A stretch of DNA of 63,922 nt, counting the filler, from Olpidium bornovanus S191 (taxonomy: Eukaryota > Fungi > Olpidiomycota), in the NCBI GenBank assembly GCA_017911155.1. It is 34 parts of 34 records of this genome, joined end to end, with 100 filler letters (N's around TTAATTAATTAA, not from the genome) between each part and the next. Parts side by side here need not be neighbours in the genome. Positions count along the whole stretch, not along the records: positions 50,229 to 51,854 come from JAEFCI010000028.1; 33 more parts are not named here. The stretch is one strand, 5' to 3'. This document shows, piece after piece, positions 50,229 through 52,063 of this stretch. Position numbers and translations under genes: made by a program. The stretch's first letter is position 1, and every line of letters starts with the position of its first letter. Under the pieces are notes generated by a model that worked only from the letters and a program-made list of their open reading frames with translations, was not told the origin of the DNA and did not search any database.

Positions 50229-51356
50229 CATGCCGATCGTCGGGTCGATGATTCTGGTAACCGTACCAGAGTAATTGACAAGGAGCTCTTTGCTCGCGGC
50301 CTGAATGTGCCGATCTGACGCGGTTGACGACGTGGTAGCTTGCGACGGCGGAAGCAGATAAACGTAGGACAACGAAAATCTCGAAGCGTCATCCTTAGGT
50401 GTCTCCGGCACGGCCTGAGAAAAGAGCAACAGAGCGCGCCTGTCGACCTCGGCGAGCCGGAGGTTCAGAAAATAGCAGCAGGTCGCGACGCGCAGCGCGT
50501 GGTAGTATCGAAGGACGTGATCGCCTCGGAAGAGGACAAAAATCGACCGAGCGGAATTGGCGGGCTTGTCGCGTACATCCGAGGGCGAACGAGCGGCACT
50601 GCCGGCATCGCAAGGAACAACCTCGTCATCGTCGGGCGATGGAGCCGTATAATGGCGGGGAAGTCCCGCATCAACCAGCTCGACGTAAAACCTTGGCTCA
50701 GACCGACCTTCGATGGAGCTTCTCGCCCTTACGAGACCAAATACGTTGGCTCTCCGGAGCTTAGATCCTAGGTGTACATGAGGCACCACGTCTGACACCG
50801 TCCGGCACCGTTTTGCAATACTTTCGAGGCCGCCTTCCGCCGGCGGAAGCAGCGCGTCCGGCCGGCGGTCGGCTTCCGCGCTGGCAAAAAGGGTTCTAAA
50901 ATCTAGATTCCTTGGTTGCATCATGGAGTCCAGGCTGTTCTCGGGAAGGAGGAGAGGCTCACCGAACACCTCGATCCGGGGAAACACCGGGTTCTTGCTG
51001 GACCCTAAAACGACACTTCCGGGCACGTAATTGAACACCGAAACGGCAACCAGCCTGGTCGCCCACCTGGGGTCGTAGGCGGTTACCTCGCAACGTACGA
51101 GCCCGCCGTGCAGGTCGGCAAACACGAGCGAGTGGAACTTGAATCGCAGCCCGTGCGAAGCGGCGGAACTCTCGTCACGCTCCGCGGCCGTCGGCGGTCG
51201 AATGCGGCCGACGAGGACGACGTCGCGCCTGTTTGCTCCCAGTTCCGCCGAGAAGCATCCCCATCGCGAAGCAAAGGCGGGGGCTTGGAGCAGCTCGGCG
51301 ACAGTAACAACCTCAACGCCGCCGCCGGCCTCCGGCCCGCCGGAAGCAGGATGCAT
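50229..51356 (-). CDS. CTC1: CTC1-like telomere CST-complex subunit, N-terminal OB folds, 3'-truncated
   Basis: SLVFADLHGGLVRCEVTAYDPRWATRLVAVSVFNYVP..RIEVFGEP, NVFGLVRARS..RFYVEL, RYYHALRVATCCYFLNLRL and LLVNYSGTVTRIIDPTIGM follow, in the same order, recalled human CTC1 blocks ([80 protein letters not shown]). Confidence 0.78.
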
Positions 51357-51798
51357 GCCGCGGGGGCGAGGAGTGGCGGCGCTGCGCGGTGGCGGTGATT
51401 CCTTGCTTGCCTCGACTTCGAGATGTAACTGTGCGGGGTGCCAACGCAATCAACAAATTGAATGCATTGTCACATAAATCATTGCATAGATATCTACGGT
51501 TAAGTCATTAATCAACAATGGAACTTCTGTTCCGGCGGGAGCGGAAGAGAAATGGTTCTCACCCCTTCCCCAATTCCCCCCCCCCCCCCCTTTTTTTTTG
51601 CCGCGCCACGCTTTTCCGCAACCGCCAAACGCAACCGACCGCCCGCCGCACCCGCCGCCTGGGCGCCACCCGCTGCAATGGTGAGCCGGACGGAAAAAGG
51701 AGGGACGCCGCTGGGGTCCGCCCGCCCCGAGCGCTGTTGGTCGCCCGGCTCCTTTTCCGACCCAGCAGGCGCGGCCTCGCGTCGAACGGGCTTGTGGT

Positions 51799-51842
<44 letters not shown>

Positions 51843-52063
51843 GCGGCCGGGGAANNNNNNNNNNNNNNNNNNNNNNNNNNNNNNNNNNNNNNNNNNNNTT
51901 AATTAATTAANNNNNNNNNNNNNNNNNNNNNNNNNNNNNNNNNNNNNNNNNNNNCTTGCTTGCGGCCTCGCGAGGGGTTGAATTGTTCGGTCGAAGGGAT
52001 TGTTCGCAGCGCACCTTCCACCCTCCGGCCCGCCCGTCCCCCGCAGGAAAAAAAAAAAAAAAG

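Follow-up and report, generated by a model that had tools for sequence, protein, structure and literature searches.

The distribution of Ctc1 among fungi has recently been redrawn. Cai and de Lange (2023; PMC10499019) reported Ctc1 orthologues in Zoopagomycota, Mucoromycota and Dictyostelium, with predicted structures that align well with human Ctc1, and concluded that early eukaryotes had Ctc1-like proteins. Work from the Lue laboratory (2025; PMC11997776) regards CTC1 as probably the ancestral form and Cdc13 as restricted to Saccharomycotina, and also points out that, outside animals and plants, CTC1 is difficult to recognise from its sequence. Basidiomycetes and fission yeasts have, 'despite extensive efforts', not yielded any plausible CTC1- or Cdc13-like protein (PMC11997776), and a 2022 paper on Ustilago likewise found none in U. 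maydis (PMC9119445). For Pezizomycotina, our search of the literature on CTC1 yielded nothing specific. An earlier note on the DNA studied here had set out from CTC1 as a protein known mainly from animals and plants, a background that the orthologues reported in Zoopagomycota and Mucoromycota have made outdated (PMC10499019). Its wider implication, that the ancestral fungal machinery was of the CTC1 type, agrees with the status already given to CTC1, but is for that same reason not new (PMC11997776). Since it has already been published both that basal fungi have CTC1 and that this form is ancestral, one more fungal CTC1 would leave the evolutionary picture unchanged.

A full CTC1 is a protein of about 900-1300 amino acids, in which an ARODL three-helix bundle is accompanied by OB folds at the C-terminus for the binding of ssDNA and STN1. 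In human CTC1 (PDB 6W6W, 8D0B and 8SOJ; Pfam PF15489 and PF15491) tandem OB-like domains start near the N-terminus, and the same layout is predicted for the candidate ORF described here, of which three stretches, residues 85-141, 262-304 and 358-376, resemble residues ~132-195, 243-283 and 347-364 of 8d0b_A at comparable spacing. Low expression is a further likeness, as is a very fast sequence evolution, which is typical of CTC1. Unlike human CTC1, however, the ORF has ~65 fewer residues before the first matched block, a longer linker, and an inserted loop of ~38 residues. Any counterparts of the human ARODL bundle and of OB-D to OB-G would lie beyond residue 376, where the piece of DNA ends.

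Other multi-OB proteins have to be considered alongside. POT1 (PF02765 and PF16686), of which Ustilago maydis has a four-OB form, shares the N-terminal tandem OB layout and provides the nearest language-model clusters, but the ORF has neither a match to its profiles nor an above-shuffle similarity to OB1 or OB2 of human POT1. RPA1/Rfa1 and the Cdc13 of Saccharomycotina resemble the candidate in being multi-OB binders of ssDNA, yet no RPA or Cdc13 domain of Pfam matches the ORF, although a member of RPA1, given the conservation of that family, would have matched. If the piece is fungal, the proteins of Linderina pennispora (A0A1Y1WN78) and Lichtheimia corymbifera (A0A068RQH6), both human-type CTC1 (PMC10499019), would be of the same kind. 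If these two are among the representatives that were searched, neither reached an E-value of 1e-3, which would make the ORF a very distant relative of them at best.

A weakly expressed reading frame on the minus strand

The window is a stretch of 63,922 nucleotides, filler included, in which the usable DNA that we analysed runs from 50229 to 51854 (1626 bases; Table 1). On its minus strand, an ORF starts with the ATG at 51356-51354 and stays open for 376 codons up to the edge of the piece at 50229. Upstream of this ATG the frame is open to a TTG at 51449, with no earlier ATG there. At ~62% GC, stops are expected at ~0.03 per codon, and the calculated chance of an open run of 376 codons is ~1e-5. 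GC contents of 0.65, 0.50 and 0.67 at the three codon positions form a typical coding signature, and codon bias is moderate. Furthermore, contigs of RNA run X4 are colinear with the DNA at 50260-51033 and 51175-51393, at a depth of 3-5 and without joints, which indicates that the ORF is transcribed at a low level; no introns are seen in the parts that these contigs cover, and the 5' UTR extends to at least 51393. The ORF is a genuine, weakly expressed gene, the N-terminal part of which lies in the piece.

Table 1. Features of the analysed piece, in positions of the window; residue numbers refer to the 376-residue protein fragment.
Feature	Position	Strand	Evidence
Orphan protein CDS, first 376 residues	50229..51356	-	ORF list, translation, GC1/2/3, RNA contigs
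First OB-like domain, residues ~40-141 (predicted)	50934..51239	-	BLASTP, hhalign, hmmsearch, Atlas
Second OB-like domain, residues ~200-335 (predicted)	50352..50759	-	Block test, Atlas
Likely first strand of third OB-like domain, residues 358-376, LVNYSGTVTRIIDPTIGM	50229..50285	-	Smith-Waterman, eye-chosen block
Upstream region shared by the ORF and the divergent plus-strand gene	51357..51606	.	RNA contig ends, repeat scan, sequence
First exon of neighbour gene: 5' UTR, ATG 51678-51680, one G	51607..51681	+	RNA contigs, translation, sequence
First intron of neighbour gene, incomplete, more than 173 nt	51682..51854	+	Splice donor, loose end

Within the coding sequence, Rfam reports a sub-threshold match to the plant microRNA family MIR7729 at 51224-51300 (+), scoring 24 bits (gathering score 92) at an E-value of 0.019. 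We took this to be a chance match, and the Rfam output otherwise consisted just of sub-threshold chance matches.

Searches for relatives of the protein

At E ≤ 10, hmmscan against Pfam returned no family at all for the whole ORF, an extended version of it, or four pieces. This holds for the two CTC1 models, PF15489 (CTC1) and PF15491 (CTC1_2), for the POT1 models PF02765 and PF16686, and for the OB models of RPA, Cdc13 and Cdc24. The two CTC1 models do label the mammalian CTC1 fragments discussed below (P0002-P0005). A phmmer search of all PDB chains, human CTC1 and POT1 included, gave nothing for either the whole ORF or residues 185-376. With residues 31-150 as the query, the same search brought up esterases at an E-value of ~0.8, which we regard as chance.

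In a word-indexed search of 5.8 billion proteins, which takes candidates of 207-658 aa only, no relative was found at E ≤ 0.01 or at E ≤ 10. When 1.84 billion cluster representatives were searched exhaustively by phmmer, without a length limit, no credible relative came up either. The single match (P0001, E 3e-4), a bacterial SprB-repeat protein of 3032 aa that carries a secretion-tail domain, was rejected as a chance match because its score sums seven repeats. Nor did the metagenome and prokaryotic genome collections contain a related locus, or a contig that would extend the piece. The absence of any relative among 1.84 billion representatives argues that the source lineage is poorly sampled, or else that the gene is evolving extremely fast. 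For a gene of any well-sampled fungal group, such a result would be unusual.

The earlier note had proposed to compare the ORF with CTC1 profiles by HMMER, and a predicted model with the structure of human CST, and to look for telomeric repeats. The profile comparison came out empty, as described above, and a search of the window for telomere repeats found none. AlphaFold2, run without an alignment, did give models, but at a pLDDT of 30.5 (376 aa) and 34.6 (residues 12-145) these are unusable for a comparison with human CST, and these values also make any fold search with the models meaningless.

Similarity to human CTC1 blocks

The similarity to human CTC1 was assessed with segments that were checked against the PDB, where they are 100% identical to residues 103-159, 217-283 and 347-379 of 8d0b_A. 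Smith-Waterman scores were compared with those of 3000 shuffles; since the blocks were picked by eye, the resulting p-values are optimistic. With this proviso for eye-chosen blocks, matches are found at ORF residues 85-112 (p 0.004), at 262-304 (50445-50573; block 'VSIIVQ...', p 0.06), and at 359-376 (p 0.002). The human counterpart of the last stretch, ORF 358-376, is presumably the start of the third OB fold, OB-C. All three matches follow the same order as in CTC1, at similar spacing, and the score of the ordered chain, although biased by the choice of blocks, is 118 against 71 ± 6 in shuffles (z 7.6). Reversed human CTC1 blocks score below the mean of the null. In semi-global alignments of the blocks, 44 of the 140 aligned pairs are identities.

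What was claimed before is a match to four ordered blocks of human CTC1. Of this, three short collinear stretches have been retained, but in blocks 1 and 2 the first half by itself does not match the ORF (p 0.99 and 0.17). As a control we used structurally equivalent, PDB-verified segments of human POT1, residues 9-75 (OB1) and 148-214 (OB2), and these align with the ORF at chance level (p 0.44 and 0.61).

Similarity to mammalian CTC1 fragments

By means of a profile with the human blocks, the word-indexed search fetched four N-terminal fragments of mammalian CTC1, all of them labelled PF15489: one from pig (379 aa), one from gray whale (581 aa), and two from assemblies of sequencing runs. The three mammalian sequences that were compared are not mutually independent, and are splice or partial forms in which the second half of block 2 is absent; for this reason only one of the three stretches could be tested without bias. 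BLASTP of the whole ORF against the fragments of whale (P0003) and pig (P0002) gave best HSPs at ORF 85-126 and 85-141, respectively, with an E-value of 0.008 each that applies to a single pairwise comparison. The HSPs, the longer of which, on ORF 85-141, corresponds to 50934-51104, align with the first of the N-terminal OB-like domains of CTC1, in its C-terminal half, and the motifs 'PVFP' and 'P-x-L-x-PE' (P-L-L-PE) are common to the ORF and mammalian CTC1.

Other methods led to the same place. Whole-sequence Smith-Waterman comparison of the ORF with the mammalian fragments gave p-values of 0.004-0.02 in shuffles; hhalign against an alignment of the four CTC1 sequences gave an E-value of 0.041 and a probability of 1.3% over ORF 76-115; and hmmsearch with an HMM of that four-fragment alignment gave the ORF 3.5 bits over residues 84-121, a score that is reached by 0.4% of 4000 shuffles. 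In all comparisons with the mammalian fragments, the aligned parts overlap within a single stretch, ORF 76-141. Taken as a similarity of sequence, the CTC1 signal is reproducible and specific to CTC1 versus POT1, but it is marginal, and far below the significance expected of a database search. MAFFT alignments of either the ORF or the mammalian fragments with the short human blocks were misaligned, and have been excluded as evidence.

OB-fold character

Comparison with the ESM Atlas places the protein among OB-fold families. For the whole fragment the nearest clusters are POT1 (0.92 and 0.91), Cdc24-OB (0.91) and CTC1 (0.90), with RADX, POT1PC and BRCA2-OB2 clusters also near; CTC1 clusters account for 6 of the top 100 matches. 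Residues 185-376 are closest to POT1/POT1PC (0.94 with 178 shared features, and 0.92 with 180), with MEIOB and RPA OB clusters next, while residues 1-185 fall near Cdc24-OB, POT1, the RPA N-terminal domain, HIN, CTC1 and TEBP/TPP1 at 0.84-0.87. POT1 clusters rank first for both the whole protein and residues 185-376 (0.92-0.94, 159-180 shared features), with other OB families nearly equal. It should be noted that the recognition value of the ORF in the Atlas is low, at 1567, where 91% of known families reach 2300, and that the measure is uncalibrated for parts of proteins; these matches count as leads.

That two non-overlapping halves of the protein independently fall into one and the same uncommon clan, that of nucleic-acid binders with OB folds, is fair support for tandem OB folds, though it does not settle the family. 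On all the evidence together, we consider it very probable that the protein contains tandem OB folds. The limits of the OB-like domains in Table 1 are predicted ones, and those of the first domain were read by eye from the pattern of strands. In the predicted second domain, residues 231-268 (50553-50666) form a loop of ~38 residues that is rich in Pro, Asp and Ser.

A candidate large subunit of CST

So what kind of OB-fold protein would this be? On the sequence comparisons given above, we tentatively read the ORF as the N-terminus of a very divergent, CTC1-like large subunit of CST, a reading to which we give somewhat less than an even chance. It is the best single assignment because CTC1 is the sole family with an above-shuffle sequence signal, and because the matches are collinear. 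It is also favoured by the circumstance that POT1 and RPA1 are normally caught by Pfam, whereas CTC1 outside animals and plants is known to escape detection by sequence (PMC11997776). The animal/plant-type CTC1 of the earlier note has in this way been kept as a best guess on a weak collinear signal, but it has to do without a match to the CTC1 profiles of Pfam. Given that no such match was obtained, and that the C-terminal defining features of CTC1 lie outside the piece, the ORF is designated a CTC1-like candidate, and not a member of CTC1.

Under the CTC1 assignment, the 376 residues would amount to two full OB folds and the start of a third, equivalent to OB-A, OB-B and OB-C of human CTC1. 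The N-terminal region would, as in animals, contact DNA polymerase alpha/primase as well as POT1-TPP1, and C-terminal OB folds beyond the edge of the piece would bind telomeric ssDNA and STN1-TEN1. The resulting CST complex (CTC1-STN1-TEN1) would recruit Pol alpha/primase, leading to fill-in of the telomeric C-strand, and would limit telomerase. We infer the assignment from the similarities to CTC1, and the whole of this putative mechanism from the family.

Several observations speak against CTC1. PF15489 and PF15491 match neither the whole protein nor its pieces at E ≤ 10, and phmmer finds nothing in the PDB, even though human CTC1 is contained in it. The hhalign probability is just 1.3%, and the three mammalian comparisons are mutually dependent. 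Two of the three block matches come from eye-chosen blocks, and two blocks match without their first halves. Moreover, the Atlas features of residues 185-376 are nearer to POT1 clusters (0.94, 178 shared features), the AlphaFold2 models have a pLDDT of 30 and 35, and the C-terminal half that defines the family lies outside the piece.

The near-equality of OB families in the Atlas leads to a different explanation, namely a lineage-specific OB-fold protein that binds ssDNA and is neither CTC1 nor POT1. It might be like Cdc24/RPA, RADX or TPP1/Tpz1, for instance, or be a paralogue without a name, and would serve replication, repair or the maintenance of telomeres by binding ssDNA or partner proteins with its tandem OB folds. 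Such a protein would account for the spread of Atlas matches over Cdc24_OB, Rep-A_N, HIN, RADX, MEIOB, TEBP/TPP1 and archaeal RPA-like clusters at 0.84-0.92, as well as for the silence of all family profiles and the want of a relative in 1.84 billion representatives. Yet the sole sequence signal above shuffles is to CTC1, and collinear, and most of the families just named have Pfam models that usually match their members; we therefore think this explanation rather unlikely, though it deserves to be kept in mind. A divergent POT1 that carries one additional OB fold at its N-terminus, a form described in basidiomycetes and for the ancestral metazoan POT1, would have the OB1 and OB2 that bind the telomeric G-strand at residues ~200-335 and from 358 onward. 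Such a layout, with OB-N, OB1 and OB2, is in keeping with the POT1 of Ustilago maydis, which has four OB folds (PMC9119445), and in the Atlas both the whole protein and residues 185-376 lie nearest to POT1/POT1PC clusters (0.92-0.94, 178-180 shared features). The preference for these POT1 clusters of ~300 aa, however, may reflect nothing but the length of two OB folds that they share with the query. Furthermore, PF02765 and PF16686 are silent on the ORF, although the POT1 clusters of ascomycetes, plants and oomycetes that the Atlas returned do carry their labels; phmmer finds no POT1 in the PDB; and the human OB1 and OB2 segments score at chance. We consider a divergent POT1 quite improbable.

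Lastly, the protein could be a fast-evolving orphan without any OB fold, its resemblances being due to chance or composition. With an Atlas recognition of 1567, below 2300, the high feature scores are weak, AlphaFold gives no fold, and all similarities of sequence are marginal, which speaks for such an orphan. Nonetheless, two non-overlapping halves independently reach the same rare OB-fold clan, and in several tests less than 2% of shuffles attain the similarity to CTC1, and this makes the absence of OB folds improbable.

Returning to the CTC1-like candidate, its weight depends on the lineage from which it comes. If the CTC1 assignment is true, the ORF would extend a family that is known in animals, plants, slime moulds and early-branching fungi by a further, very divergent protein, and would add little to the accepted view of an ancestral CTC1-type CST. 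It would carry greater weight if the source lineage is one that is still without a known large subunit of CST, by offering a bridge to test C-strand fill-in there. That the ORF is the missing, diverged CTC1 of such a lineage (Basidiomycota, relatives of fission yeast, or other Dikarya) we regard as an outside chance. If this were true, fungi thought to have 'Stn1-Ten1 only' would keep a three-subunit CST, the large subunit of which has escaped detection by sequence. At the least, the main value of the locus is that of a concrete candidate, with defined weak motifs at ORF 85-141, 262-304 and 358-376.

Origin of the stretch and the neighbouring gene

Among indexed DNA runs, the stretch is found in two soil metagenomes only, with 8-27% of the sampled words depending on the part that was queried; the run index, by its own description, omits runs of some pathogens. 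The RNA runs that contain it belong to two studies, and the organism label of these also covers WGS, Hi-C and ATAC-seq runs of 10-47 Gb. RNA runs X1-X3 contain 68-74% of the words of the piece. Two large RNA runs with the same organism label have 0 reads, even on the well-expressed exon of the neighbour. Together, the DNA from soil metagenomes, the host-labelled RNA runs and the 0 reads in two of them suggest that the stretch belongs to a soil-borne eukaryotic microbe that is associated with, or contaminates, samples of a large-genome host. Host or contaminant DNA had been put forward in the earlier note as one outcome that would undo its reading, and the pattern of runs comes close to this, in the form of a soil-borne microbe in host-labelled samples. 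The compact divergent promoter, the C/T-rich tract and the codon usage are, in our judgement, compatible with a filamentous fungus, without being diagnostic of one.

The divergent neighbour is expressed well above the ORF (depth 42 of its contig in run X1), and the two genes have no functional link. A GTGAGC splice donor lies at 51682, and at 51681 the RNA contigs of X1 (depth 42) and X4 (depth 12) end loosely. Spliced RNA contigs of the neighbour, which continue outside the piece, translate to MGKAKKTRKFA, probably the N-terminus, which is conserved, of Fcf1/Utp24, a PIN-domain protein of rRNA processing. A scan for tandem repeats shows a C15/T9 tract at 51576-51599, directly upstream of the start of the plus-strand transcript, and a run of 43 G at 51799-51841 inside the first intron of the neighbour. 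Coverage by reads and contigs breaks at both of these, and the 43-G run, which is situated near the end of the contig, could be natural or an artefact of two-colour sequencing.
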